A stretch of DNA of 64,000 nucleotides from Octopus sinensis (Eukaryota), in NCBI RefSeq assembly GCF_006345805.1, contig NC_043004.1:89590001-89654000 (forward strand), in the 5' to 3' direction. The notes beneath the pieces were generated by a model that saw only the letters and a program-made list of their open reading frames with translations, was not told the origin of the DNA and did not search any database. Position numbers and translations under genes: made by a program. Shown here one piece after another: positions 1,479 through 56,851 of the stretch (its first letter is position 1; each line of letters opens with the position of its first letter).

Positions 1479-3839
1479 ATGGGAAAATCATATCTCTGTA
1501 ATATCTGTGGTTTATCATTCTGTAAAAATAGTTACTTAACTACTCACAAACGTATTCATACAGGAGAAAAGCCATATTACTGTGATGTTTGTGGTAAATC
1601 TTTCTCTCAGTCAGGCAGCTTGACTAAACATAAGCACATTCATGCAAAAGAGAAAGCATATCACTGTGATATTTGTGGTAAGTCCTTCACTGAAGGAAAT
1701 TCCTTAACTACACACAAGCGTATTCATACAGGTGAGAAGCCGTATCACTGTAATATCTGTGGTAAATCTTTCTCTAGGAATGATTATTTAACTAACCACA
1801 CACGTATTCATACAGGGGAGAAACCATATCGCTGTGATATCTGTGGCAAATCTTTCCCACAAACGTGTCGTTTAGCTACCCACAAGCGTATTCATACAGG
1901 AGAGAAACCATATCACTGTGATATCTGTGGCAAATCATTCCCACAAACATGTGGTTTATCTACCCATAAACGTATTCATACAGGAGAGAAACCATATCAT
2001 TGTGATATCTGTGGTAAATCATTCTCTGTAAATAGTACCTTAACTAAACACATACGTATACATACAGGGGAGAAGCCATATTGCTGTGATATCTGTGATA
2101 AATCCTTTTCTGATTACAGTAGCTTAACTGCACATAGACGTATTCATACTGGAGAAAAACCATATAATTGTGATATCTGTGGTAAATCATTCTCTCGAAA
2201 TTATCATTTAATTACTCACAAACGCACTCATACAGGAGCTAGGCCATATCATTGCGATATCTGTGGTAAATCATTTTCTCAAAATGAGCACTTAAATTCT
2301 CACAAACGTATTCATACTGGTGAGAAACCATATCGTTGTGATGTCTGTGGCAAATCATTCTCTGGAAGTAATAATTTCACTAACCACAAGCGTATTCATA
2401 CAGGACTGAAACCTTATCAATGTAATATCTGTGAAAAGTCATTCTCTGTAAGAAGTAACCTAATTACTCACAAACGAATTCATACTGGAGAGAAACCCTA
2501 CCACTGTGATATCTGTGGTAAATCATTCTCTAGAAAATATCACTTAACTACTCACGAACGCATTCACACAGGGGAGAAACCATATCACTGTGATATCTGT
2601 GGTAAGTCATTCCATGCAGGAAGTAACTTAACTACTCACAAGCGCATTCACACAGGGGAGAAACCATATAGCTGTGATATCTGTGGTAAATCTTTCTCTA
2701 GGAATGATTATTTAACTAACCACACACGTATTCATACAGGGGAGAAACCATATCGCTGTGATATCTGTGGCAAATCTTTCCCACAAACGTGTCGTTTAGC
2801 TACCCACAAGCGTATTCATACAGGAGAGAAACCATATCACTGTGATATCTGTGGCAAATCATTCCCACAAACATGTGGTTTATCTACCCATAAACGTATT
2901 CATACAGGAGAGAAACCATATCATTGTGATATCTGTGGTAAATCATTCTCTGTAAATAGTACCTTAACTAAACACATACGTATACATACAGGGGAGAAGC
3001 CATATTGCTGTGATATCTGTGATAAATCCTTTTCTGATTACAGTAGCTTAACTGCACATAGACGTATTCATACTGGAGAAAAACCATATAATTGTGATAT
3101 CTGTGGTAAATCATTCTCTCGAAATTATCATTTAATTACTCACAAACGCACTCATACAGGAGCTAAGCCATATCACTGTGATATCTGTGGTAAATCATTT
3201 TCTCAAAATGAGCACTTAAATTCTCACAAACGTATTCATACTGGTGAGAAACCATATCGTTGTGATGTCTGTGGCAAATCATTCTCTGGAAGTAATAATT
3301 TCACTAACCACAAACGTATTCATACAGGACTGAAACCTTATCAATGTAATATCTGTGAAAAGTCATTCTCCGTAAGAAGTAACCTAATTACTCACAAACG
3401 AATTCATACCGGAGAAAAACCCTACCACTGTGATATCTGTGGTAAATCATTCTCTAGAAAATATCACTTAACTACTCACGAACGTATTCACACAGGGGAG
3501 AAACCATATCACTGTGATATCTGTGGTAAGTCATTCCATGCAGGAAGTAACTTAACTACTCACAAACGCATTCACACAGGGGAGAAGCCATATCGCTGTG
3601 ATATTTGTGGTAAATCTTTCTCTCAAAGTAGTGAATCAAATACTCACAAACGTATTCATACAGGAGAAAAACCATATCAGTGTGATATCTGTGGTAAATC
3701 ATTCTCTCGAAATGATCAGTTGGCTGCACACAAACATATTCATAGAGGAGAAAAACCATATCACTGCTACATCTGTAGTAAATCATATTCTCGCAAAAGT
3801 CTCTTATCTACACATGAATGTATTCATGCAGAAGAATAA
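1479..3839 (+). CDS. C2H2 zinc-finger array protein ZNF-A, 786 aa, 28 fingers, single coding exon, no KRAB/BTB/SCAN domain
   Basis: Open ORF of CX2CX12HX3H fingers with TGEKPY linkers. In-frame TAA at 1449-1451 closes the frame upstream, so the first ATG (1479) is the likely start; the track's TTG start at 1461 is unlikely. Confidence 0.93.
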   Translation: MGKSYLCNICGLSFCKNSYLTTHKRIHTGEKPYYCDVCGKSFSQSGSLTKHKHIHAKEKAYHCDICGKSFTEGNSLTTHKRIHTGEKPYHCNICGKSFSRNDYLTNHTRIHTGEKPYRCDICGKSFPQTCRLATHKRIHTGEKPYHCDICGKSFPQTCGLSTHKRIHTGEKPYHCDICGKSFSVNSTLTKHIRIHTGEKPYCCDICDKSFSDYSSLTAHRRIHTGEKPYNCDICGKSFSRNYHLITHKRTHTGARPYHCDICGKSFSQNEHLNSHKRIHTGEKPYRCDVCGKSFSGSNNFTNHKRIHTGLKPYQCNICEKSFSVRSNLITHKRIHTGEKPYHCDICGKSFSRKYHLTTHERIHTGEKPYHCDICGKSFHAGSNLTTHKRIHTGEKPYSCDICGKSFSRNDYLTNHTRIHTGEKPYRCDICGKSFPQTCRLATHKRIHTGEKPYHCDICGKSFPQTCGLSTHKRIHTGEKPYHCDICGKSFSVNSTLTKHIRIHTGEKPYCCDICDKSFSDYSSLTAHRRIHTGEKPYNCDICGKSFSRNYHLITHKRTHTGAKPYHCDICGKSFSQNEHLNSHKRIHTGEKPYRCDVCGKSFSGSNNFTNHKRIHTGLKPYQCNICEKSFSVRSNLITHKRIHTGEKPYHCDICGKSFSRKYHLTTHERIHTGEKPYHCDICGKSFHAGSNLTTHKRIHTGEKPYRCDICGKSFSQSSESNTHKRIHTGEKPYQCDICGKSFSRNDQLAAHKHIHRGEKPYHCYICSKSYSRKSLLSTHECIHAEE
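1753..3600 (+). repeat. 924-bp (11-finger) tandem duplication inside ZNF-A: 1753-2676 / 2677-3600
   Basis: Direct comparison at offset 924 (11 x 84 nt). First 489 bp identical, 11 differences in the remainder. Confidence 0.97.
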
Positions 3840-6792: not shown

Positions 6793-8290
6793 GGATCTTT
6801 TCTGTTTGGCGACTACAGTTTCAAAATTCAAAGTTTATTGAAAATTTTAAAATTTGGTACATTAATGCAGTTTTCCAAGTTGAATTGATAGAGTTATTTC
6901 AGTCATTTGACTGCGGCCATGCTGGAGCACCGCCTTTTAGTTGAGCAAATCGACCCTGGGACTTATTCTTTGTAAGCCCAGTACTTATTCTATCGGTCTC
7001 TTTTGCCAAACCGCTAAGTGACGGGGACGTAAACACACCAGCATCGGTTGTCAAACAATGCTAGGGGGACAAACACAGACATGTATATATACATATATAC
7101 GACGGGCTTCTTTCAGTTTCCGTCTACCAAATCCACTCACAAGGCTTTGGTTGGCCTGAGGCTATAGTAGAAAACACTTGCCCAAGATACCAAGTGGGAC
7201 TGAACCCGGAACCATGTGGTTGGTAAGCAAGCTACTTACCACACAGCCGCTCCTGCTTTCCAGAAAAATAAAAAAAAAAACGTTATAGAGATTTAAAGTT
7301 TAATCATTTTCATCCAGTCACGAAACAAGATTTGGAAGTTATCATTTTGTATGTGACTACACATTTTGTCAACATCTTGAAAATAGCACTTGTTCTTTTA
7401 TATGAAACCATAAACAAATGAATTGCGCACGACATATAACCCTCATAGCTTTTTTTTTTTTTTTGGTATTTTCAGAAAATTTTTATTAATTTTTATTCTA
7501 AACGTGGGACTTCATATGATTATGTAAAAAAAAAGCTGTGGAGATGCGTGATTTAAAGCCTATTTAGCTGTTATTTTTAGCACACCTCACAATCACCTCA
7601 ATGACAAACAAAAAACGAGTAAACAACACGTATTTTATAGTTTTTAGCATTTAATGTGATAAACAGCACAATACGAACCAAATATTTCTCAAAATAAGAA
7701 ACTTATAGCACATTACAAATTAAATGTTAAAAAAAAAACAAACAAACATCTCAACAATCTTCCCAGGACCACCTTAACTAGATGATGGAGCAGGTCCTCC
7801 GCATATACTTCCCTAACATAGCTGTTATAATCAACAGCTGTGCAATGGCTCATCCCCTGTTCTTCAACACAAAACTGGACTGAAGTCAATTCCTTAACCC
7901 ATGAGTAAAGTAAAAGCACTAGAGTCCGAAGAGGAAGAGCGCCACCTTCAAACCATGTGTCTTTCCTCCCTGACACAGACTCCATGCATCGCCAATACAT
8001 ATTCTCACCACGTTTTCTTGTACTCATAAAATGCTTCTTCGTTTTGCATAATTTTCTTTTGAGTATAACACCCTTTTCTTGGGAGTACGAAACTGCATCC
8101 TCTTTTGGTGTGTGATTTAAGGCCTATTTGGCTGCTATTTTTAGCATACACGACAACCATCTCAATGACTGGAACATATTAGTCAACATGTTCTTTCTGA
8201 CAGACAAAATAGTTCGCATGTTTGGCTTATTACTATGGAAACAGGCATGAATGGCTAAAATTACCCCAAATTTTCGAACTTTAATAGCTA
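6793..8290 (-). mobile_element. Merlin/ISXO2-like DNA transposon relic (transposase fragment ~7720-8100), interrupted by a SINE
   Basis: Minus ORF 7713-8027 (VSGRKDTWFEGGALPLRTLVLLLYSW...SHCTAVDYNSYVREV) resembles the region N-terminal to the ISXO2/Merlin DDE core. Left end GGATCTTTTCTGTTTG (6793) matches the MITE termini at 19201 and 34673. Confidence 0.7.
6897..7256 (-). mobile_element. Octopus tRNA-derived SINE, family A
   Basis: Reverse complement of the GCAGGAGTGGCTGTGTGGTAAG...CAGTCAAATGACTGAAA element also at 46642, 56632 and 62284, with an internal (TA/CA)n tract. Confidence 0.9.
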
Positions 8291-9254: not shown

Positions 9255-10062
9255 GGGTATTTTGGGATGTCTGTACTGGTATGGACATGTGCTACAGATG
9301 GATGAGGAAAGCTGTGTGAAGAAGTGTCACTCCTAAACAGTAGAAGGAACCCATGGTAGAAGGAGACCCAGGAACACATGGGATGAGGTGGTGAAGCATG
9401 ACCTTTGAAAGCTGGACCTCACAGAGGCAATGACAAAAGACCTAGGCCTCTGGAGATATGCTGTGACTGAGAAGACCTGGCAAGTATAGTGAGATCACAG
9501 CCGTAGCCTACACCAGTGTCGCATAACCAGCCCACTTAAAAAAGTACCTTTGGATCATTGGGCGACATGACGTGCTCGAGGAGACCTATTGAGTCAAGTA
9601 AAATCAAAGTCAAATAAAACCACACTCAAATAGAAATTGTAGTTGTGGCTGATGCCTGACTGGCTCCCGTGCTGGTGGAATGCAATAAGCACCATTCATG
9701 TGTGGATCGTTGCCAGTGCTGCCTGACTGGCTCCCATGCCGGTGGCATGCAATAAGCACCATTCATGCGTGTGTCATTGCCAGTGCCACTTACTGGCTCC
9801 CGTGCTGGTGGCACGTAAAATGCACCATCCGATCGTGGCCGATGCCAGCCCCCTTTCCCCGACTAGCTCCTATGCTGGTGGCACGTAAAAAGCACCCACT
9901 ACACTCTCAGAGTGGTTGGCATTAGGAAGGGCATCCAGCTGTAGAAACATTGCCAGATCAGATTGGAGCCTGGTGCAGCCTCCTGGCTTGCCAGATCCCA
10001 GTCAAACCATCCAACCCATGCCAGTATGGAAAACGGACATTAAACGATGATGATGTTGATGA
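9255..10062 (+). mobile_element. RTE LINE 3' end (ORF C-terminus plus 3' UTR with ~65-70 bp tandem units) and (GAT)n tail
   Basis: Encodes a decayed GHVLQMDEESCVKKCHS..VEGTHGRRRPRNTWDEVVKHDL, four GGTGG(C/A)A..(T)AA.AAGCACC units, and ends AAACGATGATGATGTTGATGAT. Confidence 0.85.
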
Positions 10063-11339
10063 TACTGCACACACCAGTCAGCATGAATACTTCTTTCTAC
10101 AGCTTTTTCATAAAGTGGTAGATTCAAGTTCATTTTCAGATTCTCAAATAGCCAGTGGTAAAATTTTTACCACTTGTAAGAGAGAGAGGCATTCTTTAAC
10201 CTTTGGCTTTCAGGTTACTCTGTCAAATGTAATGCTTATTTATTCATATTGTCTTGAATTAATCATGCATTATCTCATAGCTTTGATATTTTAATGATGT
10301 TATTGTTTATTATTAGAATGACATTGTAGAATAGGTATGAGAGGCTGGATTTGGCTAGTTTAAACATAATACAGGTAGAATATTTGGTTTAGATATGACT
10401 GGTTTAAATGCTAAAAGGCTAAACTTACTCTGTTGGAGAATGATGCCCAGGAGGATGTATGAGCTTCTCAAATAACTTTAGGGTTGTTTTCAACATGTAA
10501 TCTAATTTGCTTTAGCTTTAAGCTCAGAGATCAACATATATTAGTTCCCAGAGACAACCTGTCTTAAATTCCTCTGCTGTGGCATGAAAGACAATGACGA
10601 ATAGGAGGGGACTGAGAACTAATCTCTGGTGAAGCCTACCTGTATACTAAATTCGCCGTATACTCATGGCTAACTCTTACTGACAGCACCCCTGTACATG
10701 ACTTCTATGGTTTTATAAACTATTTGTCTACCACTAGCTTCCTCAGAGACCACTACATTACAGAGCGAGGGACTCTGTCAAAGGCTTTCCCAGGTCAATA
10801 AGTGACAAGTACTATGGTCTACTCTTAGCTCAATACTATTCTTGTAGTTGTTTGACTAAGAAAATAACATCAGTAGCACTTCTTCCTGGTACAAAACTGA
10901 ACTGCATTAACAAATTAAGAAATAATTCAATTGTTGAGATAAATGTTTAGATGTATAGTTTATCAATATAGAAATGGAGCAAAATGTCTACTACTGAATT
11001 TTGAATATCTTGCATATCTTATACTGTTTCTATTTTATTTCAGAATATCAGGTGTCATTGAATCAAAAGAACTCTTTACATCAAATACATCATCAATATT
11101 TAGACAAAAAAATAGAAAATTTTTCTATATAAATATTTTGTGGAATTACTGTGTAGAATCTGTACAAGATTAGTTTAAATCTAATTAAAATTGTCCCAAG
11201 TTACAAAAGAGTTTTCAGCATCTTCAGATATAGAGAAATAAAGCAGTTTATACAAATATAGCAGAAGAAATATTTGCTTGGAATAAAATGTAACAAGGGA
11301 AATAAGAAAAATATCTGTATATTGCAGTAAGAGAAGAAA

Positions 11340-13550
11340 ATGACAGAATTATGTGAGGCCCAGGTTTATGGTAAAACACAGTCTAAAAGGATTGATTTTC
11401 CTAATGAGATACTAGAAGAAAAAGGAAAATCATCATACAGCTGTGATATCTCTAAAAAATCATTCTCTCAGAAATGTTATCTAACAAGTCGCAAACGTAT
11501 CCATACAAGAGAGAAACATCACTGTGATATCTGTGGTAAATCATTTGCTGGAAGTAGTGATTTAACTAAGCACATACGTATTCATACTGGAGAGAAACCA
11601 TATCAATGTGATATCTGTGCTAAATCATTCTCTCGTAATAGTGATTTAACTACTCACAAACGCATTCACACAGGAGAAAAGCCCTATCACTGTAATGTTT
11701 GTGGTAAATCATTCTCTCAAGGAAATACCCTAACTAGACATAAACACATTCATACGGGAGAGAAGCCATATCACTGTGATATTTGTGGTAAATCATTCTC
11801 TCAAAAGGATCACTTAATTACTCACAAGCGAATTCATACAGGAGAGGAGCCATATCATTGTGATATCTGTGGTAAATCATTTTCTGGAGGAAGCAGCTTG
11901 ATTGCTCACAAACGCATTCATACTGGTCAGAAGGCATATCACTGTGATATCTGTGGTAAGTCATTCTCAGAAGGAAGTAATTTAACTAAACACAAATATA
12001 TTCATACAGGAGTGAAAGAATATCACTGTGATATCTGTGGTAAATCATTCTTTCAAAAAGGTCACTTGATTAGGCATAGATATATTCATACAGGAGAGAG
12101 GCCATATCACTGTGATATCTGTGGTAAATCATTTTCTGTAAATGATCACTTAATTACCCACAAACGTACTCATACAGGAGAGAAACCATATCACTGTGAT
12201 ATCTGCAATAAATCATTCTCTGGAGGAAGCAGTTTAACTAGACACAAACGAATTCATACAGGAGAGAAGCAATATCACTGTGATATTTGTAGTAAATCAT
12301 TCTCTCATGGAAATGCCTTAAATACTCACAAATGTACTCATACAGGAGAGAAGCCATATCACTGTGATGCGTGTGATAAATCATTCTCTTTAAGAAGTCA
12401 CTTCACTATTCACAAACAAATGCATACAGGAGAAAATACATATCAGTGTGATATATGTAGTAAATCATTCTCCAGAGGAAGCAGCTTAACTAGACACAAA
12501 CATACTCATACAGGTGAGAGGCCATATCACTGTGATATCTGTGGTAAATCATTCTCTGAAGGAAGTAATTTAACTAAACACAAATATATTCATACAGGTG
12601 AGAAACCATTTCAATGTGATATCTGTGGCATATCGTTCTTTCAAAGAATTCACTTAGTTATTCACAAACACACTCATACAGGAGAGAAACCATATGGCTG
12701 TGATATCTGTAGTAAATCATTCTCTCAGAAAAGTCACTTAAATACTCACAAATGTACTCATACAGGAGAGAAGCCATATCACTGTGATGCGTGTGATAAA
12801 TCATTCTCTTTAAGAAGTCACTTCACTATTCACAAACAAATGCATACAGGAGAAAATACATATCAGTGTGATATATGTAGTAAATCATTCTCCAGAGGAA
12901 GCAGCTTAACTAGACACAAACATACTCATACAGGTGAGAGGCCATATCACTGTGATATCTGTGGTAAATCATTCTCTGAAGGAAGTAATTTAACTAAACA
13001 CAAATATATTCATACAGGTGAGAAACCATTTCAATGTGATATCTGTGGCATATCGTTCTTTCAAAGAATTCACTTAGTTATTCACAAACACACTCATACA
13101 GGAGAGAAACCATATGGCTGTGATATCTGTAGTAAATCATTCTCTCAGAAAAGTCACTTAATTATTCACAAACGTACTCATACAGGAGAGAAACCATATC
13201 ATTGTGATATCTGTGGTAAATCATTCTCGCAAAATAGTGATGTAACTAAACACAAACGTACCCATACAGGAGAAAAGCCATATCAATGTGATATCTGTAC
13301 TAAATCATTCTCTGGAAAGGGAGATTTAACTAAACACAGACGTATTCATACTGGGGAGAAACCATATCACTGTGATATCTGTGGTAAATCATTCTCTGTT
13401 AGTGATGTCTTAAATAAACATGTTCGGATTCATACAGGTGAAAAACCATATCACTGTGATGTCTGTGGTAAATCATTCAATGTTAATAGTAACTTAAATA
13501 AACACAAACACATTCATATGGAAGAGAAGTTATATTCCTGTGATATGTAG
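11340..13550 (+). CDS. C2H2 zinc-finger array protein ZNF-B, 736 aa, 24 intact fingers plus 1 degenerate N-terminal finger
   Basis: Open ORF of canonical C2H2 repeats with TGEKPY-type linkers. In-frame TAA at 11328-11330 upstream of the ATG. No effector domain visible. Confidence 0.93.
12317..13161 (+). repeat. 420-bp (5-finger) perfect tandem duplication inside ZNF-B
   Basis: 12317-12741 and 12737-13161 are identical base for base (offset 420 = 5 x 84). Confidence 0.97.
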
Positions 13551-15429: not shown

Positions 15430-18046
15430 TTTTTTTCTTTGTTTACCTTTGTACTATGGTACGGATGGGCAGACAGAACAAAACTGCCACGGTATCATCC
15501 GTGGATGAGCTGTGCGACAAAACTGGTCGCTGTCCTAAAATGGAGCGTTGCCCGGCAAATCACATCTGTCATCTATGCACAAAACTCGAAAATTCCTTCC
15601 GAAATAGATGGGTTGAATGCAGGTATCAAAACAAGCGTCTATGCAAAATCTCACAATGAGGGGCCGTATCGGAGTGCCTTGCTCAGCAATTTACCCATAG
15701 CTCTTATGTAACCTCGACGCATCGAGGAAGTCCCTGAATCAACCACTCATGAGGTAATTGTCATCGGAGTATCGGTGTAACAAAAACCACAACCATCTTC
15801 AAACTGCCCGCTTTGACTGGAATAAAGCAGACTGGGACTCTTATTGTACCTAGCTGTGACGCCCAAACTGGCTCGAATTTTATGCCTCTGAAGATGTGAA
15901 CACTATACTTCAGAACATTCTGAATTCAATATGGGCAGCATGTGCAGCATCAGTACCACGCAAGCACAAAAAAAAACACCCAATAGTGCAATTTGGGAGA
16001 CTGCGACAGTCCGACTTGCCAGAAAAGAACGCCATAATGCTGAACAGGAATACAAATTGCACAAATCAGAGATCAACAGGAAAAAGCGCAATAGATCAGC
16101 CAACCATCTCAAGCAGGTGATAAAAAAGGCAGTGCTTGAATTCAAACAGTGCATAGCAACCAACCCTGATAGCAAAGTGTTCTGGAAGTATGTACATTCA
16201 AAGCAGAGACCTCGCTCTCCAGTTGGTCCCCTTTGCAATCCCCACACAGGACAGATTACTGGCAATCCCAAAGAATGTGCAGAAATCATTGCTGGATACT
16301 ATGCAGGCATCTTTACTGTCGAAGATCAAAATGTTCCATCTCCATCACCTCTGATACCGACTCTATAACTACTATGAAATTTACACCAGCAATGCTACAA
16401 CGCCACCTTAAGAATAAATGTAACTATGCCTTTCCTGGTCTCGATGGTGTTACATACCTACTTCTCAAATGTGGTGGGTACTTCTAAGCCAACTTTCTCT
16501 ATTCTTCCAATTCTGTCTTGACAATGGTGTTACTCCAGAGCAGTGGAAAACTGTCAGTGTTATCCCTCTGTTCAAAAAAGGTGACCGCACATCACCTGTC
16601 AACTATCGCCCTGTTAGTCTTACTAGCTGCATCGCCAAACTGATGGAATCCTGTGTCAGGGAAACCCTCTGGAACTTCTGGAAGTCTCACAGCCTCATCC
16701 AGCCGTCACAATTTGGATTTATTCCTAACTCCAGCTGCTGTAATCAACTCATCGAGTTTCTTGAGGACCGTTACCCAAATCACTGATCGCGGATCCTGGG
16801 TGGATGTTGTTTACCTGGACTTTCCTAAGGCTTTTAACTCTGTGCCACACAAAAGACTTATGGTGAAACTCTCTGCGTTGGGCATAAGAGATGAACTCCA
16901 TAACTGGTTGAAGTCCTTTATTTTCGGCCGAAAAGAGGTTGTCACAGTTCTAGGACTGCACTCTTTGCCCTATGAGATGACATCTGGTGTACCACAGGGA
17001 TCTGTTCTTGGCACCCTTTTATTTGTTGCATATGTTAATGACATAGATGCCAACTTAAAGAATGCCACAGTGCTGAAATATGCAGATGACATCAAGCTGT
17101 ACCTTGAAATAAAGAGGTCAGATCCTGTACACTATAGATCTCTATTGCAAGCAGACCTGGACACAATGCAGCAGTGGATCATGGACTGGCAACTCAAGCT
17201 GGCTGTGGACAAATGTACCACCATGCATTTTGGGAGGAGAAACCCAGCGTCCACTTACTCCCTCCACAACACTAATCTCAAAAAGTCTTCATGTGAACAT
17301 GCCCTGGGTTTTATTGTCGACAGCGATTTGTATTGGACAAAGCACATCGCTAAAATTGCCAAGAAGGCTGAGGGTGTCTTGGCATCACTCACCAAGTCCT
17401 TTGTGAGCCGCTCTCCGGCTATCTATCTGCGGCTTTATATAGCTATGGTAAGACCTCACCTGGAATTTGCATCACCGGTCTGGAACCCCTATCTTGCCCA
17501 GGATATTAATCGTCTGGAAGCCGTTCAGTGACGTGCAACCAAAAGAATACCCTCCATCAGGCATTTGCCATATTCTGAACGCCTTACTTCCCTGGGCATG
17601 GACACATTGAAACTCTGACGTCTGGCAGCTGACTTGGCAGACACCCATAAAATTATTAACCATCTTACAAACAATAACTCTGAGCACCTTTTCAAACTCC
17701 ACCCGTCTAACACCCATGGACATATGTACAAAGTCAGAAAACAGCACAGCTCCCATGACTTTAGGAAACATTTTTTCATGCTGAGAGTTGCTGAAGCATG
17801 GAACAAACTGCCGGCATCAGTTGTTAGTTGTCGGAGCACTGCATCCTTCAAAACTTCCATGCTTTCTGAGATTCGCCAACACTACACCTGATTTTCTCCC
17901 CTCCATACACACGCAAGCATGTATCTGACTCATACATTGTTCGCTTTCCAGACATTTGTACATTACTGCATATACTTTATACGCACTTTCTGACAAGTTG
18001 TGGTGCACCTGAGCACTGTATACAATAATTTCATTATTATTATTAC
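15430..18046 (+). mobile_element. Decayed CR1/L2-type LINE (5'-truncated or deleted), RT domain, (TAT)n tail
   Basis: Broken ORFs with LFKKGDRTSPVNYRPVSLTS, YLDFPKAFNSVPH, SGVPQGSVLGTLLF, KYADD and RPHLEFASPVWNP. Stops and frameshifts near 16360, 16487, 16780 and 17529. Tail at 18033-18046. Confidence 0.92.
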
Positions 18047-18277: not shown

Positions 18278-19200
18278 GTAATGTTTCTGTGTACTTTCTC
18301 TGTTCATTCAGATAAGCTGTAGAAATTGTTGCACTTGCGCAAACACAAACACAAGAATTCTCCAGACATTTAGCTGTTATTTTTAGCATACCGAGTTTCG
18401 TGGTGAGAGCTTCACATGCCGTGATCCTTTTGCTGTTGTACTATAAATCTATGCATGTGCAAACGGACAAAACAGTGGGACGAGATTGCAAGGTGGGTGT
18501 GGATCAATTTTGGAGTTTTTCATAGAAAATTTCAAATTAAATTTTTTCCCCATGTTCATAATTGGCAAGACTTCCGCCCCACACACCACCACCCTTTAAA
18601 AAAAATGATTTTACAACACAAACCCCACCTTTCGCCTACGGAGAATATGAATCTGCAAAAAACAAATTGGCAAAAGTCGACATTTCTAAATTACCACACC
18701 TTCACCTCATTTCCTTTACTTTTAACTTTTTTTCACAATTTAAAAAAAAAAAATTATGCAGAAAAATACAGAGATTATGATTCTGAAAAAATTTCCAAAA
18801 ATCTTTGTAAATTTTTTTTTTAAGAATTTTATTCTTTTTGTAAATATGCAGAAAAATACAGACATCATTATTCGGACAAAAATTTCAAGACATTTCTGAA
18901 CTTACAGTTATGGTTAGGGTTACAGTTAAGGTTAGGGTTTTAGGGTTAGGGATAGGGCAAGGGTTTTAGGGTTAGTGTTGGGGAAAAAAGTCAAAATTGA
19001 AGAAGTTTGGGGAAAATTTTCCGGAAGCTCCGTATCCGAAAATGGGGATTTTTGGCAAAAAAAAAAAAAATTACAAAAATAAACAAATTTGGGAGAAAAT
19101 AGTGGGAGGAAGGAAGTCTTTCCTCGTAATCCAAATCACCCTTAAATCACACACCTTTCCGTCTGAAAATATTTTCAATTTTTTTTTTTTAACTAGAAAG

Positions 19201-19981
19201 GGATCTTTTCCTTTTGAACGGCAGTTTTCAACACGATTTCTAGTTAACTAAACACTTAAACTTCGTATATTGGTAGAATGTGTCAAAATAAAACATTTTT
19301 TTCTCTTGGCTTTCTTGAGAAAATTGTAATTTGCAAGTTTAACGTAGTTTAATTTTTCGAATTTTAACCAATCCTATGGCCTCTATTGAGCTAAAATCAT
19401 TTGCTGCGTCTAAAACAGACAACATCCTGTCACTCACCCTAACCTTAACCCTAACCCTAAATTTTAGCCTTTCGGGTTTTTTTTTCTTAATTGTTAAATT
19501 AATTTAAGGATAACAATTAAGAAAAAAAAACGAAAGGCTAAAACGAAAGCAATGGAAAATAATTTTAATTTAACAATTAAGAAAAAAAAAAACGAAAGCA
19601 AAAACTCAAAACAAAAACAAAACGAATAATTTTGGACACACGCATAACAATTAAATTAATTTAACAATTAAGAAAAAAAAACGAATGGCTAAAATTTAGG
19701 GTTAAGGTTAGGGTGAGGGTTAGGGGTAGGGTTAGAGTTAGGGTTAGTGACTTGATGTCTCCGTTTTAGACGCAGCAAATGATTTTAGCTCAATAGAGGC
19801 CATAGTATTGGTTAAAATTCGAAAAATTAAACTACGTTAAACTTACAAATTACAATTTTCTCAAGAAAGCCAAGAGAAAAAGAATGTTTTATTTTGACAC
19901 ATTCTACCAGTATACGAAGTTTAAAAGTGTTTAGTTAACTAGAAATTGTGTTGAAAACTGCCGTTCAAAAGGAAAAGATCT
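19201..19981. mobile_element. Palindromic MITE with ~300-bp TIRs carrying telomere-like repeats; 8-bp TSD CTAGAAAG
   Basis: Arms ~19201-19504 and ~19654-19981 are reverse complements. Termini GGATCTTTTCC...GGAAAAGATCT. CTAGAAAG at 19193-19200 and 19982-19989. CCCTAA-type run at 19436-19460 and TTAGGG-type run at 19696-19747. Confidence 0.9.
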
Positions 19982-20945
19982 CTAGAAAGATTTTTTCCGT
20001 AGTTTTTAAGTGCGTAGTGCAAAAATAAAATTGGCCAAAATCGGTCCAGAGAGGGTTGGTGAGAGGGTGTGTGATGACTCCATGGTAAAAAAAAAAAAAA
20101 TTGGAAAATTTTCAATCAAAACGGAGAAAATCTAACTTATGAGGACTTCCTGGTCTAAAAATCCGCCCAATAATTAAACGTGGCATTTTCACCATTCCAG
20201 ATATTATCCAGGAACCTAGGAAATAATTTTTGCATTAGCTCTGTAACACACACACACTCCTCTCTTAATAAATCTCAAAAAAAAAAAGAAAAAGCGAGAG
20301 TTACATCCCCTGATTGTATATCTTCAATAATCTGACTTCCGTTTTTATTCTGGAAATATTTAATTTCGTCATATTTTTTTATTATTGAACAATAAAAACT
20401 ACAGTAAGTATTTATCACTTTTACACAGAATATACTTCTTTATCTTTCTGTCTCCCATATTATCTTTACATCTACCTACAATATCTGTAAAGAAACTACA
20501 ACATTTCTTAAACATTAATTAAAGTAACAGAGGGACCAACAACTTTCTATCATTTCAGCTGTCGTTATTAACTGAAGTAAATTTATACGAATTATTTTTG
20601 CTATTAATGCTGTTTCTCTTTGTTCATCATTATAATGTTTCTTTTTATTGTAGAATCTATGAAAATAATGTTTGATCTTTAATTTAGTGATACGGCTATG
20701 AATAATGTTTCTAGAGAGGTTTAAGATTGTTATCATCCACTATGATGTGCTGTAACAGCGGGCACTACCACGGAATTATCTGTCAGGAGCTAATACCATG
20801 ACAGTGCCGTAACAGCTAATCCTACATAATATGATGGTGTAGCTGCAGCCTAAATCTATAGACTTCAGAGAAGGTAGTATGTTATAAGCTTAATAACAAT
20901 GTGGTGAATACCCCATTTTTTTTTTATTCATGTTAGAAAGTCAAA

Positions 20946-21260
20946 CATCATCATCATCATCATTTAACGTCCGGTTTCCATGCTAGCATGGGTTGGACGG
21001 TTCAGCTGGGGTCTGGGAAGCCAGAAGGCTGCACCAGGCCCAGTCAGATCTGGCAGTGTTTCTACAGCTGGATGCCCTTCCTAACGCCAACCACTCCGTG
21101 AGTGTAGTGGGTGCTTTTTACGTGCCACCAGCACAGTGGCCAGAGGAGGCTGGCATCGGCCACGATCAGTTGGTGCTTTTTTACGTGCCACCGGCACGGA
21201 GGCCAGGCGAGGCTTGCAACAGCGCATATGCTTGGCCCTGTATCATGTCTTAGCCTTGCC
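20946..21260 (-). mobile_element. RTE-tailed short element (family B)
   Basis: (CAT)n GTTTAACGTCC..TTTCCATGCTAGCATGGGTTGGACGG...GGATGCCCTTCCTAACGCCAACC motif set. Confidence 0.9.
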
Positions 21261-22905: not shown

Positions 22906-24398
22906 TATTAACAAAAATGAGTTTCATTTCTGTAATCAGCATTCAGAACTACATCAGCACACCAAATTTGAAAACAACAGCAATAAAATTCATCATCATT
23001 TAGTATGGGTCAGAGAGTTTGTCTATTGTTTGCACACAGGCATCATACAATCTACCTTTCACTTTGACAGTGAGGCCCTTTGTTACCAACAAAGGTAGAA
23101 GCTCTCTGAACATTACTCAACTTATTCTAACAGTTATGCTTTCAGAGCATCTACCTCTACTGCTGACTTGGTCACCTAGGTAACGGAAGTTCTCTACTAC
23201 TCCTAAGTATTTCCCCAGGCATTTAATGAAGTTTATTTTCTGTCAACAACTTTATCCATGTCAACAAAACCTAAGTACAGAGGTTTATTTTTGGCTAAGT
23301 ACTTCTGCAGCTACCTTACCAGGAATATAACATCTGGCACAAAACCAGACTGCATCACATCTAGACTAGCTCTTTCTTATTAGTTGATCTATGACCCTCT
23401 CCAACTTTCATCACCTGGTCCACCAATGATACCACTGTAATTATTTCTGTCTAAGGCATCCCCTTTACCTTCATAACAGTTGACTGTACTGCTTCCACGC
23501 CAGTCATTGGGTATGACTCACTTGTGGACAACCTGATTAACTATACAGGTGACTTAGACTATATCCCATAAAAACTGTGACAGCAACAGAAAAGATTTAT
23601 CTCTTTATAGAATCTCTATAGGCATGTCATGTTAAGGTGATGGAATACAAAAATGAATAAACCAATTCTATTAGTTCCTATAAGCAGTATACTTTCATCC
23701 CCACATTGTACTGATACAACACACATTCACTGAGGCATTTCTATATATATATATAACCCATTGATGAACTTGTGGAACAGTGTATCTATTTTCATCGCTA
23801 TGACTCACTCCTTTGAGTTAATTTATAGCCTTCTTTTCTGTGTATTTTGTTTCTATGTGATATTTTCTTGTTGATATCATACGTGTAGTAGTCAATATTG
23901 ACAGCTAGTGATTTATTTATCATGTTGAGATGTAAGGAAAACCATTTGTAAATGTTATCCTTCAGTTCTATACTTATCGTTAGATTCAGCTATATTTCTC
24001 TGTAATAAGACTGGAAAAGTAAAGTTCAGTTGTTAAGGTAAATGTTTATATGTACAATTTATCAATATAAAAATGTAGTCAAATGCTCACTGTTGAATCT
24101 CTACTTTTTAAATATCTTCTAATCTTATGATGTTTCTTGTTTATTTCAGAATATGAGATGGCATTCGATTAAAAGTATGATTTAACTTCAACACAATCAG
24201 ATTTACTACAAAAATTGCAACAACTTGAGATATTGACACTGATAAAAGTTGATGGAAATATATCTAGAAATATTTATTTGGAATAAATATAAAAGCAAAA
24301 AATAGAAATATCTATATATTGAAGTGAGAAAAGAAAAATTATGGGAAAATGAATACTGTGAAAAATTTCAAGGGTCGACATATTTCTTTCCCAAAAAG

Positions 24399-25346
24399 AT
24401 GTCAAATGAAATAGGTAAAACACAATACCACTGTGATATCTGTGAAAAGTCATTCTCTCAGAAAGGTAACCTGACCACTCACAAACGTATTCATACAGGA
24501 GAGAAGCCATATCACTGTGATATCTGTGGTAAATCTTTCTCTGCAAGTAGCAACTTAACAAAACACAGAAATATTCACACAGGCGAGAGGCCATTTCACT
24601 GTGATACCTGTGGTAAATCATTCTCTCAAAATGATCATCTAACTAAGCACAGACGTACTCATACAGGAGAAAAACCATATTGTTGTGATATCTGTAGAAA
24701 ATCATTTTCTCAAAATAATGAGTTAACTAATCACAAACATATTCATACAGGAGAGAAGCCATTTCACTGTGATATTTGTGGTAAATCATTCTCTGGTAAT
24801 AGTGACTTAACTACTCACACACGTATTCATACAGGAGAGAAACCATATCAATGTGATATCTGTGGTAAATCATTCTCTGACTCCGGTAACTTAGCTCCTC
24901 ACAAACGCATTCATACAGGAGAGAAACCATATCACTGTGGTGTCTGTGGTAAATCATTCTCTGCAAAATGTAACTTAACTACTCACAAACGCATTCACAC
25001 GGGGGAGAAGCCATACCACTGTTATGTCTGCGGTAAATCTTTCTCCCAAAACGATCACTTATCTATACACAAACGTATTCATACAGGAGAGAAACCATAT
25101 CACTGTCATATCTGTGGCAAATCGTTTTCTCATGGAAATACTTTAACTACTCACAAGAGGATTCATACGGGCGAGAAACCGTATCAGTGTGATATTTGTG
25201 GTAAAACCTTTTCTCAAAATGATCACTTAACTATACACAAACGTATTCATACAGGAGAGAAACCATATCACTGTGATATCTGTGGCAAACCATTCTCTCA
25301 AAAAAGCCATTTAACTACACATGTATGTATTAATACAGATGAGTAA
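24399..25346 (+). CDS. C2H2 zinc-finger array protein ZNF-C, 315 aa, 11 fingers (last lacks the second His)
   Basis: Canonical C2H2 repeats. Frame closed upstream by TAG at 24303-24305. First in-frame ATG is 24399; the track uses GTG 24324. Confidence 0.9.
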
Positions 25347-25679: not shown

Positions 25680-25886
25680 ACAATATAACACTATTTCATA
25701 TAACCACAGCTGTATCTACTTTGGTGAGATAACTTTCCATTGTGATATTTTTAATTGAAATAGTCTTTTGCAATACTTGTATAAATTCCTCCTGACATGT
25801 TTCCAGAAAAGATAAAACATACAGTTGATTTATTTGACATTGTGAGTAAATACCTGAGAAATGTATATTTCATTATACTATAATAA

Positions 25887-26997
25887 CATCATCATCATCA
25901 TCATCGTCGTTTAACGTCCGTTCTCCATGCTAGCATGGGTTGGACGGTTCGACCGGGGTTCTGGGAAGCCAGAAGGCTGCACCAGGCTCCAGTCTAATTT
26001 GGCAATGTTTCTACAGCTGGATGCCCTTCCTAACGCAACCACTCCGTGAGTGTAGTGGGTGCTTTTTACGTGCCACCTGCACAGGTGCCAGGCGGGGCTG
26101 GCAACGGCCACGGTCAGATTGGTGTATTTTATGTGCCACCGGCACGGAAGCCAGTCGAGGCGGTGCTGGCATCGGCCACGAGTCGGATAGTGCTTTTTAC
26201 GTACCACCAGACCAGGGATCCTGCTGGTTCAATTCGATTTCGATTTCGCTTGCCCCAACATGTCTTCACAAGCAAAGGGGGTTGGCAAGGGTGCCTGTCG
26301 TACGGTCGCATTGGAGTATTTTACGTGCCACGGCCACGAGTCGGATAGTGCTTTTTACGTACCACCAGACCAGGGATCCTGGCTGGTTCAATTCGATTTC
26401 GATTTCGCTTGCCCCAACATGTCTTCACAAGCAAAGGGGGTTGGCATGGGTGCCTGTCGTACGGTCGCATTGGAGTATTTTACGTGCCACGGCCCCGAGT
26501 CGGATAGTGCTTTTTACGTACCACCAGGCCAGGGATCCTGGCTGGTTCAATTCGGTTTCGATTTCGATTTCGATTTCGCTTGCCCCAACATGTCTTCGCA
26601 AGCATGGGGGGTTGGGATGGGTGTCTGTCGTCGGATGAGGTTCTATATCGACTTCGCTTGCCTCAACCGGTCTTTGTGTCCAAGGGAGGAAAGGCATTCA
26701 TAAGTGGGCTGGGCTCACTTGTCCTGCCTGGTCTTCTCACGTACAGAATATTTCCAAAGGTCTCGGTCTCTGGTCATTTCCTCAGTGAGGCCTAAGTTCG
26801 TAGGTCGTGCTTCACCACCTCGTCCCAGGTTTTCCTGGGTCTACCTCTTCCACGGGTTCCCTCAACTGCTAGGGATTGGCACTTTCTCACACACCTATCT
26901 TCATCCATTCTCGCCACATGACCATACCAGCGCAATCGTCTCTCTTGCACACCACAACTGATGCTTCTTAGGTACAACATTTCTCTCAAGGTGCTAA
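25887..26997 (-). mobile_element. RTE LINE 3' fragment with three ~159-bp tandem units in the 3' UTR
   Basis: Minus ORF 26792-27016 RRLRWYGHVARMDEDRCVRKCQSLAVEGTRGRGRPRKTWDEVVKHDL. Units recur at 26180, 26338 and 26497. (CAT)n tail at 25887. Confidence 0.9.
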
Positions 26998-27907
26998 TAT
27001 GATATATTGTATACATTATTTCTTACATGTATTTTTGTGTGAAATTATATGTATTGCATCAAGTTAATATAATAAATTGAAATTTAAATAAAACTGTTTT
27101 ACTCTTAACTTATTCTGCTACAATTTTATATGTAGAATTATCATTATCACCATCATAATTTAACCTCCATTCTCCATGCTGGCAGAGATTGCACAGTTTA
27201 ACAGAACTGAACGAACCCAAGGATTGCATTGTGTTCCATTGGTGATTTTTACATCTGGATTCCCATCCTAATGCCAACCACTCCACAACATGTACGAGGT
27301 CTTTTTTTCATACCACCAAAACTAGTGAGGCTGCTATGCATGCAAGACTATGGAACCCTGAGGGGGCAACTTTGATAGGGAAAGAGGGGTAAAAGTATGA
27401 GAGAAGGGGCTAGAGCAGAGTGATGTAGAGGAACTACTTACATTTTAAGAAAGGATGGGAGTGATTGACTGGAGCTGGAAAGTGGTAAAATAATGGTGAT
27501 GAGGTGTTAGATTAGACCTTCAGTGTACGAGGTTGGTAGAAATGAGTGGGGCACAGGGACCAGAAATGAAGTGAGAAGTAAATGCCTGATAGTACAGAGC
27601 ATTGGCATAGCAATGATAAAACAATAGACAGGAGGACAAGAGAAGGATGATGTGTAGGTTGAGGAGTATGTGCAAAAGAAGGTGGCCGGTGTTGTGCATG
27701 AGGAGAATAATGAGGAATGATAATTTGCTAATTCAGTAGGGGATGGATCAATGAAAGTGGATGAAGAAAACAGCTACCTCTTCATCCATTAATACTAACA
27801 AGTAAAATGGTTCTAGGTAGTAAGTGAAGTCAATGGTATGAAAGAAGAGCTGCAGTTAGTGAGGTGGTGGAGGTGTCTTGAGGAGGAAGGAAATTGAGTG
27901 AAAGGTT

Positions 27908-28195
27908 CATCATCATCATCGTTTAACGTCTGCTTTCCATGCTAGCATGGGTTGGACGGTTCAACTGGGGTCTGGGAAGCCTGAAGGCTGCACCAGGCCA
28001 GTCAGATCTGGCAGTGTTTCTACAGCTGGATGCCCTTCCTAACGCCAACCACTCCGTGAGTGTAGTGGGTGCTTTTTATGTGTCACTGGCACGGAGGCTG
28101 GCAACGGCCACGATCGGATGGTGTTTGTTACGTGCCACCAGCACGGAGGCCAGTCGATGCGGTGCTGGCTACGGCCACGTTTGGATGGTTCTCTT
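27908..28195 (-). mobile_element. RTE-tailed short element (family B)
   Basis: Same motif set as 20946-21260. Confidence 0.9.
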
Positions 28196-28229
28196 ATGTG
28201 TGCAAATATATATTCATATATTCAGCTGT

Positions 28230-38175: not shown

Positions 38176-38969
38176 AAAAATATAAGGATATTCTAAAAGA
38201 AAAATAGTTATAAAATACTTAAAAGAAGTTTAAATGTCAATATATTATTACAAACACTTTTTATATAGAAAGCATATGCTTGAAACTGTAATGTCATTAA
38301 TATTCTACTGATACATTCCTTACATCTTTGAAATTATGCTATAACACCTTAGATCCAACTTCTATGGATTTTTTCTTTTTAGTTGTAATGTTGATATGTA
38401 ACACCACCAAGAACTGCACTATGAAGACTAGGGAACTATATATAGAACATCCCAGAAGTCATGTCTACATCAGGAGAGATGGGAGAGGAAGCTAGTAAGC
38501 ATCACAAGGGGATTGCTCTCTTAATTGCTGAGAAACAAAAATGAAAGATACTCTGATGTTCTGAACTATATAAGAACAAGAATTAGATTTAGTCTACTGA
38601 AGAGCATCTTAATTGTACTTTAAGAGACAGAGAAATAAGCTTCACCTATTTCTATGCTGTCAGTCAGTCATATAGAATTCACTGAGGACTTCAGGGATGT
38701 TCTATATATAGTTCCCTAGTCTTCATAGTGCAGTTCTTGGTGGTGTTACATATCAACATTACAACTAAAAAAAAAATCCATAGAAGTTGGATCTAAGGTG
38801 TTATAGCATAATTTCAAAGATGTAAGGAATGTATCAGTAGAATATTAATGACATTACAGTTTCAAGCATATGCTTTCTATATAAAAAGTGTTTGTAATAA
38901 TATATTGACATTTAAACTTCTTTTAAGTATTTTATAACTATTTTTCTTTTAGAATATCCTTATATTTTT
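38176..38969. repeat. Long inverted repeat in MPC1 intron 1: ~285-bp arms, 226-nt spacer
   Basis: 38176-38460 is the reverse complement of 38687-38969 apart from one substitution and a poly-T difference. Confidence 0.96.
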
Positions 38970-40143: not shown

Positions 40144-42623
40144 GGTGCCCCAGCATGGCCACAGCTCGTGAGCTGAAACTAGAATCAATCATATATATAT
40201 ATATATATATATATGTCTACATACACACACACACACATGAGGGGTGGTCATTAAAGATTTCCACTGACATGTCACATTCTAAATTGCAGCTTTCCACTAG
40301 TATTTGTTTGTCTTTCATGGATGCTGAAGTCGACTAAGGTGTTACAATTGCAGCAGTTGAATGCAGCTCAGTAATCAGGTTCTTATACTTGAAAAGTCAT
40401 ACACCAAAAGAAACCTAAAGGATTTGGTTTTATAAGCAATTTCAGATGCAAAACTAGCCATTTCTATGATCTGTTCAAACTATGCAATAACAAAGCTTGT
40501 AAACACTCTAAATTTGACTGTATCAGAATACCACCTCTAACATACTGTGGATGTTTACAAAATTACATCAGACTAACAAGATTATCGCTACATAGAAGAA
40601 TGAGCGTACATAATCAACAGATGATGGAAAAACAAGGAAAATTCCATTAAGTGGCCATATAGCAATATGTGCTTGAATGGAGTCACTGAACTTTATAATA
40701 TTTACATTTTACAAATGCATCGACTCTGCCACAGAACAAAAAATAAACAAAGTCAATTTATGCAATGAATAGCTGACAAATAATTTCTTCGAATTATGGG
40801 CATTTTAGATATGCAGGCATAGACATGCACATACATATTCACATACTGTTTTCTATATATGATAAAAAAATATTAACCTATGTGTGTGTGTGTGTGTGTA
40901 CACTAGTGAATGTGTATATATGTGTGTCTTTTATATTTTATAAAGGCTATTCAATTTTTCGCGGACAGTCTACATAAAAGGCCAGAGTTAGTACTTAAAT
41001 ATTTACCACCTGCTTGAAAACAAAGTTTATTTAACCATTTCTTATCTTTTATCCTGATTACCTCATTGTTATTCTACACACATTGTCATCTCTACCTATC
41101 TGCTTGCTAGTCTGTCTGTTTTTTGTTTGGCTTATCCTTTCATTTGTTGTCTTGTAACCTGATACTCTAGTTGTCTGACCAACTGCAACAATTTCAACCA
41201 TACAGCAACTGTTATAATTATTTTCTCTCTTTCAGACCAGTTATATGTTGGCTAAAAAAGATTCTTCTATCCCTCTGACCCCTACCCCTTTCCTTTCATT
41301 CCATGTGACCAGTGTTCCACACAGCCTGACCTTTCTTGGTTCAACTACCATCCATGTAGCATCTCATATTCCTTCCCATGACTTTCATATCTAATGTTCC
41401 TGCTGTAAGGCTTCACTTCTACACACACTGGCTTAATTTAATTCATCCTTACTCAAAAGACACCTGTTGTTAATGTCCTGCTGTTTGTATTTGTAATTGT
41501 GTACCATTTCTCCATTTTCTTCATTCTTGTTTTGGTATACATTTTGCTTGCTTTCTTTCAAAGAACCTAGTAACAAGTAATAACAAATAGAAGTAATAAC
41601 TTGTGATAAAATTTTTCAGTTTTAGTAAAAGCTAACATTTTCTAAATATAAATATTTTATTTGAAATTCTTATCCTTAGCTGCAATATTTTAAGTAAAAA
41701 TTTTCTTGTTTGTACTTTACCAGTTGTAAAAACTTGCCTGATCTTTTCCACATGTAATAACATGTCCTGTACTTTTCCAGATATATAGTCTTAAGAATAT
41801 AATTTCTCTTGCTCGCATTTTTCCATGTAATATACATATTATATGCATGTGTGGTGTGTGTGTATATATTATTATCATCATCATCATTGTTTAAGATCCA
41901 TCTACCATGCATGCATGGGTAGGACGTATCACAGGTAGAAAAACTACCCTGTTCTACTCTGTTTTGGCAGTGTATTTATGGTTGGATGCCCTTCCTAACA
42001 TCAACTACTACACAGAGTGGACTCAGTGCTTTTCACGTGGCACTAGCACAGGCAAGGTTAGTTTTGGCCTGATTTTTACAGCTGGATGTCCTTCCAAATG
42101 CCAACCACTTTACAGTAAAGACTGGATGCTTTTTACATAGCACCAGAACTGGCAGGGTCACTGAGTAACTCATAAGAAAAGGAATTATGAGAGGGGCAGG
42201 AGCATTTGAGGAGGGGAACTTGTGTCAGATGATGAAAGGTTAGAGGGAGGCAGAAATAGGTGTCTTGGTATAGAGGAGGTACATGGTTACCCAGCAAGAG
42301 AGAGAGAGAGAGAGAAAAAGAGAAAGCAACCAAGAATGAGGGCAGAAATAGGTATGCTGCTGTAGAGGAGATATTTGTGGCTACTCAGTCGCCAGAGGAA
42401 AGAGCAAGAGAAGAGTGAGAGAGAGAGAGTGGGAAAGAACAAGAGAAGAGTGAGAGAGAGAGTGGGAAACAACAAAAGTGTAAGAGAGAGCAGGTGAAAG
42501 ATGGTTATGTGCCAGGTATATTTACAAGTAACAAGGATCATAACATAGATGTAATAGTAGAGTAAAGAAAAGGGAGATATGAAGGTTGTAATATGTGTGC
42601 TCAGGTGTTGTCCAAAATATATG

Positions 42624-46641: not shown

Positions 46642-47030
46642 TAGGCGCAGGAGTGGCTGTGTGGTAAGTAGCTTGATAACCAACCACATGGTTCTGGGTT
46701 CAGTCCCACTGCATGGCATCTTGGGCAAGTGTCTTCTGCTATAGCCCTGGGCCGACCAATGCCTTGTGAGTGGATTTGGTAGACGGAAACTGAAGACTGT
46801 CGTATATATGTATATATAAATATGTGTTTGTGTGTCTGTGTTTGTCCCCCCAACATGGCTTGACAACCGATGCTGGTGTGTTTACGTCCCCGTCACTTAG
46901 CGGTTCGGCAAAAGAGACTGATAGAATAAGTACTGGGCTTACAAAGAATAAGTCCCGGGGTTGATTTGCTCGATTAAAGGCGGTGCTCCAGCATGGCCAC
47001 AGTCAAATGACTGAAACAAGTAAAAGAGTA
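46642..47030 (+). mobile_element. SINE family A, full length
   Basis: TAGGCGCAGGAGTGGCTGTGTGG...CAAATGACTGAAACAAGTAAAAGAGTA. Confidence 0.92.
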
Positions 47031-48077: not shown

Positions 48078-48978
48078 GGGTGCAATGAGTAAATTATTTG
48101 CCATTTTATCTTTTTAATTTTGTGCCTGCACAAAATATGTTTTTGATTTTGTCAACTACACAGCATAGTAGGGTCAGTTGGGCAATGTTTGTCAGGAAAA
48201 CAGCACTGTGATGCAATTCACTATGACAGAAATTTGGAAATGACATGCTGTATTGCTGGAAGCTCCAATATGAACATTTCAGAGTGTTTTGGTGTCAATC
48301 TGATGACAGTGCAATCTGAAAGTGATAAAAATCAAGCATCCAGTCAAATAAAGTTCATTGCATATACGTAATTGAGAGACAACTGTCCTGACAGTGTTCT
48401 GTGTTGGCAAAAAGTTAACACAAATAATTCAAGCAGTTGGATATATTTCATGATGTGAAGTCTAATGTTTCAGATGCCTCTTTGGAGAGAGACAAGATAT
48501 AAATATCTCAAGTTGCAAAATTACAAATTATAAAAAAATGTGGGATGATATTGAGGGGTAGATGCAGGGAGATAAAGGGAGCGAAAACAACTAGAGTGTA
48601 ATGGTATGAGCAGTATAGGAGATATATGATGTGAGAGGAATTAAAATGTAGAAGAGAAGTTGTCAAAAAAATAGCATGATAGAAGTCAGGTGAAAAAGTG
48701 AGTGCCAGGGAGGCGGCTGAATAAGGAGTTGTGTTTTATCATTTTCTCAACTTTCTTTTGTTTTCTGGGGGGGATATAATAATCATCTTTTTGAATAGTT
48801 TGTTCAATGGCAGCATGTAGCTTCATAATTTGTGTCTACTAAACTGATGATATTCATTGTTATTTATAAGTTTAGTGAATGCTCAATTCCTTGCCATCTT
48901 ATAGATATTGCTTTTTCTTTTCTTCAGTATCCTTAAAAATTTTTTAGAATGTTTTCAGAGACTGTTTTGATATAACAT

Positions 48979-49316
48979 TATCATCATCATCATCATCGTT
49001 TAACGTCCGCTTTCCATGCTAGCATGGGTTGGACGGTTCAACTGGGGTCTGGCAAGCCCGAAGGCTGCACCAGGCCAGTCAGATCTGGCAGTGTTTCTAC
49101 AGCTGGATGCCCTTCCTAACGCCAACCACTCCGAGAGTGTAGTGGGTGATTTTATGTGCCACCGACACAGGTGCCAGACGAGGCTGGCAGACGGCCACGC
49201 TCGGATGGTGTTTTTTATGTGCCACCGACACAGGTGCCAGACGAGGCTGGCTGACGGCCACGCTCGGATGGTGTTTTCTTATGTGTCACCGACACAGGTT
49301 CCAGACGAGGCTGGCG
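48979..49316 (-). mobile_element. RTE-tailed family B element with ~63-bp tandem units
   Basis: Same motif set as 20946. Units at 49154, 49217 and 49281. Lies ~185 nt upstream of MPC1 exon 3. Confidence 0.9.
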
Positions 49317-56631: not shown

Positions 56632-56820
56632 CTCTCTTTTACTTGTTTCAGTCATTTGACTGTGGCCATGCTGGAGCACCGCCTTTAATCGAGCAAATCG
56701 ACCCCGGGACTTATTCTTTGTAAGCCCAGTACTTATTCTATTGGTCTCTTTTGCCGAACCGCTAAGTGACGGGGATGTAAACACACCAGCATCGGTTGTC
56801 AAGCAATGCTAGGGGGACAA

Positions 56821-56851
<31 letters not shown>

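Follow-up and report, generated by a model that had tools for sequence, protein, structure and literature searches.

In vertebrate poly-zinc-finger (poly-ZF) and KRAB-ZNF genes, whole fingers are gained and lost by recombination between the repeated finger units (PMC2604467, PMC3126818). Paralogues from young expansions nearly always differ in finger number, and conversion tracts of the GENECONV type have been detected (Emerson and Thomas 2009, PMC2604467; Nowick et al. 2011, PMC3126818). In PRDM9, where the number of fingers is polymorphic, identical fingers arise within one exon through non-allelic conversion or intra-exon duplication (Oliver et al. 2009, PMC2779102); the fingers are nearly all alike, and their differences, which are under positive selection, lie mainly at the contact residues -1, 3 and 6 (PMC2779102). 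Here we describe ZNF-A, a C2H2 poly-ZF gene of Octopus sinensis in which a block of 11 fingers is present twice, head-to-tail, with divergence between the copies confined to one half. The gene lies in a 64-kb window, by which we mean the whole stretch of DNA analysed (64,000 nucleotides of contig NC_043004.1, positions 89,590,001 to 89,654,000). The block was probably duplicated by unequal exchange within the array and reshaped by one further recombination event.

PMC12513265 and PMC9795677 (with Albertin et al. 2015 as cited there) describe a lineage-specific expansion of C2H2 ZNF genes in coleoid cephalopods, with clustered genes and gene-level tandem duplication. The present locus resembles this picture, with three long C2H2 arrays clustered in 64 kb, a CDICGKSFS-type framework and repeat-rich DNA, and a search of PMC12513265 by terms gave no mention of within-gene finger-block duplication or conversion.

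An 11-finger block is present twice in the ZNF-A array

The ZNF-A open reading frame (ORF) and the parts of its array are as follows.

1479..3839, + strand: ZNF-A ORF, first in-frame ATG to TAA stop; 28 consecutive canonical C2H2 fingers with an 84-bp period
1485..1752, + strand: left flank, unduplicated; fingers 1-3 and the start of finger 4; ~77% identical to the matching block end
1753..2676, + strand: copy 1 of the block, 924 bp; rest of finger 4 to Cys1 of finger 15; the boundary slides by up to +4 bp
2677..2680, + strand: duplication junction ATAT, from the three-boundary alignment
2677..3600, + strand: copy 2 of the block; rest of finger 15 to Cys1 of finger 26; 98.81% identical to copy 1
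3601..3836, + strand: right flank, unduplicated; rest of finger 26 and fingers 27-28

The C-x2-C-x12-H-x3-H pattern with all four zinc ligands is found in 28/28 units, and the TGEKP linker in 14-15 of the 16 unique units. The reading frame, which has also been given from 1461 (1461/1479..3839), stays open over 2.36 kb within DNA of 37% GC, and the ORF matches the Pfam families zf-H2C2_2 (4e-243) and zf-C2H2 (6e-150). The framework residues are nearly invariant between fingers, with entropies of 0-0.7 bits at framework positions and 2.5-3.0 bits at helix positions -1, 1, 2 and 3. Judged by its sequence, ZNF-A is an intact Krueppel-type C2H2 poly-zinc-finger gene, and its product is predicted to read DNA.

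Self-comparison of the array at an offset of 924 bp, equal to 11 x 84, places the two copies head-to-tail, in frame and in register. The agreement ends leftward at a mismatch at 1752 and rightward at one at 2681, with background mismatch beyond. Other registers of ZNF-A, as well as the neighbouring arrays ZNF-B and ZNF-C, are only 75-78% identical to the block, and non-homologous finger pairs have a mean identity of 75.1%. Against this array background the copy pair, at 98.8%, is a clear outlier. The most similar pair of non-homologous fingers (91.7% identical DNA) consists of fingers 5 (QTCRLAT) and 6 (QTCGLST), at 1833-2000 and again at 2757-2924; this is an older single-finger duplication, present four times after the block duplication.

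The junction was mapped by aligning three boundaries, namely upstream/block-start, copy 1/copy 2 and block-end/downstream. The internal junction tracks block-end/downstream up to G2676 and upstream/block-start from C2681, and the switch is confined to the 4 bp between these diagnostic mismatches (2677-2680). Over 90 bp the parental boundaries share only 77% identity, and 18 bp directly to the right of the switch match exactly. Finger 15 is chimeric, taking YSCD from the finger-26 side and its helix, RNDYLTN, from finger 4, and both the frame and a canonical TGEKP linker are kept across the join of the two copies. A length in whole units, an unbroken frame and a junction at homologous positions of the unit are together what a block duplication by unequal exchange would be expected to leave.

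Mosaic divergence between the copies

The divergence between the copies divides the block into two tracts.

1753..2241, + strand: identical tract, 489 bp, equal to 2677-3165; 0 changes at 101 synonymous sites
2242..2676, + strand: diverged tract, 435 bp, compared with 3166-3600; 11 differences (2.5%)

The differences fall at 2242, 2252, 2255, 2390, 2447, 2486, 2492, 2561, 2642, 2663 and 2670. All but one of the 11 are transitions. Nine are silent changes at the third codon position, and six of these occur at two-fold sites, where a transition is the only silent change; CpG is involved in four of the differences. One replacement, R/K (AGG/AAG at 2242), affects the lysine position of the linker TGA[R/K]P in finger 9/20; the other, S/R (AGC/CGC at 2670), affects the residue preceding Cys1 in finger 15/26, which is the most variable non-helix position of the array. 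Helix positions -1 to +6 are hit by none of the 11 differences (P = 0.04 for all 11 sites, 0.075 for the nine synonymous ones), which taken alone is marginal evidence. An earlier note on this DNA, made from the letters alone, had reported the 489-bp identity, the make-up of the 11 substitutions and the untouched recognition helices; self-comparison gave the same identical tract, every count agreed and the helices are indeed untouched.

The distribution of the differences was examined by permutation. A run of at least 489 bp free of differences, given 11 differences among 924 sites, has P = 0.0026, with the same value under three site models (all positions, third positions and transition-synonymous sites), and the boundary of identity is statistically real. 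Likewise, synonymous changes number 0 at 101 sites in 1755-2241 versus 9 at 87.5 sites in the diverged part. These figures reject uniform divergence, and the pattern calls for a second recombination event.

The nature of the differences points to selection. Only 34% of the possible transitions in the block are silent, and at least nine silent ones among ten has P = 4.6e-4. A formal dN/dS analysis by the NG86 method over 2241-2676 gave dS = 0.111 and dN = 0.0058, with a ratio (omega) of ~0.05. This signature supports the differences being selection-filtered biological variants, not read errors, and the low omega shows that the variants passed through purifying selection.

A second in-frame duplication, in ZNF-B

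Three ORFs built only of C2H2 fingers are present in the 64 kb, all on the + strand and with repeat-rich DNA of 37% GC between them. Besides ZNF-A these are:

11340-13550, + strand: ZNF-B, 24-25 fingers
24324-25346, + strand: ZNF-C, 10-11 fingers

ZNF-B, 8 kb from ZNF-A, contains a perfect in-frame tandem duplication of five fingers, in which 12317-12741 equals 12737-13161 (offset 420, 425 identical bases). Its junction has a 5-bp overlap inside a helix-coding stretch. From its anatomy, this looks like an independent and younger case of the process proposed for ZNF-A, at zero divergence. ZNF-B also has an N-terminal extension.

Searches for relatives and independent records

A whole-protein homologue search with ZNF-A returned only long vertebrate or generic poly-ZF matches, at most 63% identical, and no ortholog. 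A HMMER scan of 1.84 billion representatives likewise gave only long generic poly-ZF proteins and no close relative, the best match being 57% identical. A helix-only query, with the framework residues masked by X, gave no match to the helix series of ZNF-A in 5.8 billion proteins, those of O. bimaculoides and O. vulgaris included; it returned one O. vulgaris match and one Logan match, each only 32% identical. Exact-product look-ups for ZNF-A, ZNF-B, ZNF-C, the reverse-transcriptase ORF described below and two other ORFs of the window found none on record, and two metagenome scans, one with the finger-4 helix DNA and one with a degenerate finger-5 pattern, gave no matching contig.

Origin of the duplication

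From the anatomy of the array we infer a duplication that exists in the animal and was made by recombination. Probably, it reflects a real in-register unequal exchange within the ZNF-A array together with one further recombination event between diverged templates. An in-register exchange between 84-bp units at an offset of 11 units would have duplicated 11 finger-lengths; the exchange itself may have been homeologous recombination or unequal crossover, or template switching, with the switch point at 2677-2680 giving rise to the chimeric finger 15. A 17-finger protein would in this way have become a 28-finger protein, carrying two sets of the same 11 recognition helices joined by TGEKP. The further recombination event between diverged templates would then have rendered the copies mosaic.

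Three versions of this history can be drawn. In version (a), the duplication would be older (dS 0.11), and at least 489 bp would have been recently converted between the copies, anchored at the left homology edge. In version (b), unequal crossover between two alleles sharing the same 5' half and differing in a diverged 3' half would have produced copies that were born different. In version (c), the duplication would be young and its copies identical at first; one of them would later have recombined near 2242/3166 with a diverged allele or paralogue, through crossover or conversion, and so have received a different 3' part. The three versions fit equally well, and one haploid sequence cannot discriminate between them. 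A nested-duplication route to the mosaic, free of conversion, was rejected; unequal exchange would leave the 3' part in three copies.

The versions also differ in where selection acted. If version (a) holds, purifying selection acted on both copies after the duplication. If version (b) or (c) holds, or if the second copy is an artefact, it acted on the single block, because differences that came from alleles or paralogues at or after the duplication record selection on that block and not on the doubled state. The earlier note had inferred purifying selection on the doubled DNA-binding code; this stands for the variants, which are selection-filtered, and goes beyond the data for the doubling itself. 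Its appeal to gene conversion or unequal crossover, made from the identity boundary, is sensible in that some recombination event is called for (P = 0.0026), without the particular scenario being established.

Several considerations weigh against the proposed history. The copy number rests on one assembly, and two recent block duplications among three adjacent genes could signal a systematic fault of the assembly as well as a high biological rate. Under version (a), tandem copies of 924 bp and near-identical sequence must have lasted for a dS of 0.11 without loss, a time comparable to the ~8% genome-wide divergence between O. vulgaris and O. bimaculoides (PMC6472339), and an ortholog of ZNF-A is not annotated in either of these species. 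For versions (b) and (c), divergence at this locus must exceed several-fold the average octopod heterozygosity, which genome-wide is 0.95-1.22% in several species (PMC9795677, PMC6472339, bioRxiv 10.1101/2023.05.16.540928) and only 0.08% in O. bimaculoides.

The copy number would be false if the animal had a single block that the assembly traversed twice, through mis-registered overlap of noisy reads or through haplotypes placed in tandem, with the 11 differences being heterozygous sites resolved differently in the two false copies. The overall difference of 11/924 (1.19%) is indeed of the size of the octopod heterozygosity cited above, and allelic variants would likewise be expected to be mostly synonymous and clustered. 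Moreover, there is the second block duplication in ZNF-B, 8 kb off, the protein, exact-product and metagenome searches found no independent copy of the locus, and a tolerant overlap assembler working on noisy reads could make the join. However, the 64 kb run without gaps (the window contains no N), and with 4 bp shared at the switch and boundaries only 77% identical locally the join is impossible for an exact-overlap or k-mer assembler. Long reads readily bridge an array of 2.4 kb, and polishing of the copies with multi-mapped reads would more likely have removed differences than left 11 of them. The local divergence amounts to 2.5% over 435 bp of constrained coding sequence. Neither an adjacent gap or contig end nor a junction explicable by overlap, by which a false (haplotypic) duplication is recognised, was found. 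We consider an assembly artefact unlikely on this evidence. The earlier note's statement that the repeat is not a simple read-level collapse is borne out by the selection-filtered variants, the 4-bp junction and the gap-free sequence, though for an overlap assembler given noisy reads error keeps some probability.

Two further accounts accept the duplication and explain the mosaic differently. Were point mutation the only process after duplication, the 489-bp run would be a chance clustering of 11 mutations. The events are few, and the tight clusters 2242/2252/2255 and 2486/2492 may represent fewer independent ones, but the improbability of the run under all three site models and the unequal synonymous counts of the two parts leave this account very improbable. 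Alternatively, short ectopic conversions may have brought the differences in, the donors being other ZNF-A fingers or those of ZNF-B or ZNF-C, and the shared framework would then mimic purifying selection; all 11 sites do lie in framework or linker codons common to all fingers, and they are clustered. Yet the longest exact matches of the variant states to other fingers of the window are 5-37 bp, no longer than in controls (median 19, 90th percentile 48), and at the majority of sites one of the two states is uncommon among the fingers, as a new mutation would be. Micro-conversion from other window fingers is unsupported as the source of the 11 differences, no donor for the mosaic tract was found among the other fingers of the 64-kb window, and we give ectopic import very little credence. 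Unequal exchange followed by a further recombination event is the history that we prefer.

Possible consequences for DNA binding

If all fingers were engaged, the target of the two 11-finger modules could conceivably be a 33-bp site in direct repeat; or the modules might each occupy a separate copy of one site. A motif derived from a crude, textbook-level recognition code, TATTGGTATAANTGATGGTNCGTTTNATGAANG, was scanned through the window both alone and as a pair spaced by 33 bp. The top score for a single site was 17.5 bits (23405, minus strand), equal to the best shuffle and, with so crude a code, a weak negative; with the same crude code, no tandem pair at 33-bp spacing in the window rose above shuffles. 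The sole repeat of 33-bp period in the window, at 42397-42475, is purine-rich and unrelated to the motif. Binding to a tandemly repeated target, which the earlier note had raised, is pure conjecture.

A stronger form of the idea is that selection maintains the doubled module as a 'double reader' whose target has a 33-bp period (such as a tandem repeat or transposon array), the 489 bp of identity reflecting ongoing block-level concerted evolution. We hold this to be quite improbable. Were it true, the unit that is duplicated and homogenised as octopus ZNF arrays evolve would be the whole reading module and not the single finger.

The 5' region and domain content of ZNF-A

Upstream of ZNF-A, in-frame stops occur at 1383, 1425, 1431 and 1449, and the first ATG (1479) lies five codons ahead of finger 1. 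The KRAB domain PF01352 has no match in the ZNF-A ORF, and a PR/SET domain is absent from the ORF. Membership of the KRAB-ZNF family was rejected on the ORF being free of PF01352 and on the in-frame stops just upstream.

The region 1281-1480 is homologous to the upstream regions of ZNF-B and ZNF-C. It contains a short ORF that starts with an ATG at 1303 and runs to a GTAAGT at 1365; for a candidate 5' exon ending there, no in-phase acceptor is evident in the upstream region.

Other elements of the window

One further coding fragment was recognised.

16653-17531, + strand: jockey-like long interspersed nuclear element (LINE) reverse-transcriptase fragment; Pfam RVT_1, 6.8e-23

At the protein level it matches best to copies from Octopus bimaculoides (74-82% amino-acid identity), which indirectly makes an octopod origin of this DNA likely. 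Interstitial telomere-type TTAGGG runs are present at 18902-18983 (~12 units) and 19696-19747 (~9 units), near an imperfect inverted pair, 19199-19507 / 19651-19983 (87%).

Two families resembling short interspersed nuclear elements (SINE-like) are dispersed in both orientations at 79-93% identity. The members of one, ~380 bp long, lie at 6894-7254, 46649-47028, 56634-57017 and 62284-62671; those of the other, ~270-330 bp long, lie at 9741-10063, 20946-21217, 25883-26208, 27907-28201 and 48972-49290. A 232-aa 'ORF' at 25940-26638 is only the second of these families in tandem, with a 159-bp period (97%). Furthermore, a near-perfect inverted repeat at 38176-38460 / 38687-38969, with 285-bp arms of 98.9% identity and a ~226-bp spacer, could be a foldback or terminal inverted repeat element.

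Comparison with known systems

What is proposed for ZNF-A is the ordinary mode of poly-ZF array evolution, a well-preserved case of a known mechanism in a family known to be expanding, and knowledge of how poly-ZF genes evolve is unchanged by it. If the duplication is real, finger-array growth has here been caught in the act within the cephalopod C2H2 expansion, from 17 to 28 fingers in one step. ZNF-A would then be a concrete example of array lengthening and a locus for surveying finger-number polymorphism.

With PRDM9, ZNF-A shares nucleotide-identical units within one exon, and unequal exchange and conversion are the mechanisms proposed for both. In contrast to PRDM9, the non-homologous fingers of ZNF-A are only 75% alike, with no array-wide homogenisation, its two copies differ almost only at synonymous sites and not at contact residues, and its ORF is without PR/SET. 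PRDM9-like concerted evolution of ZNF-A was rejected on these grounds, namely the 75% mean identity, the synonymous copy differences and the ORF without SET.

The vertebrate poly-ZF and KRAB-ZNF genes offer the nearer parallel in that ZNF-A, too, appears to have changed its finger number in frame inside the array exon. It differs from them in its cephalopod lineage and in an ORF without KRAB, and the event is seen within one gene and not by way of paralogues. A further difference is that in ZNF-A one event would have copied 11 fingers, with 98.8% identity still retained between the copies.

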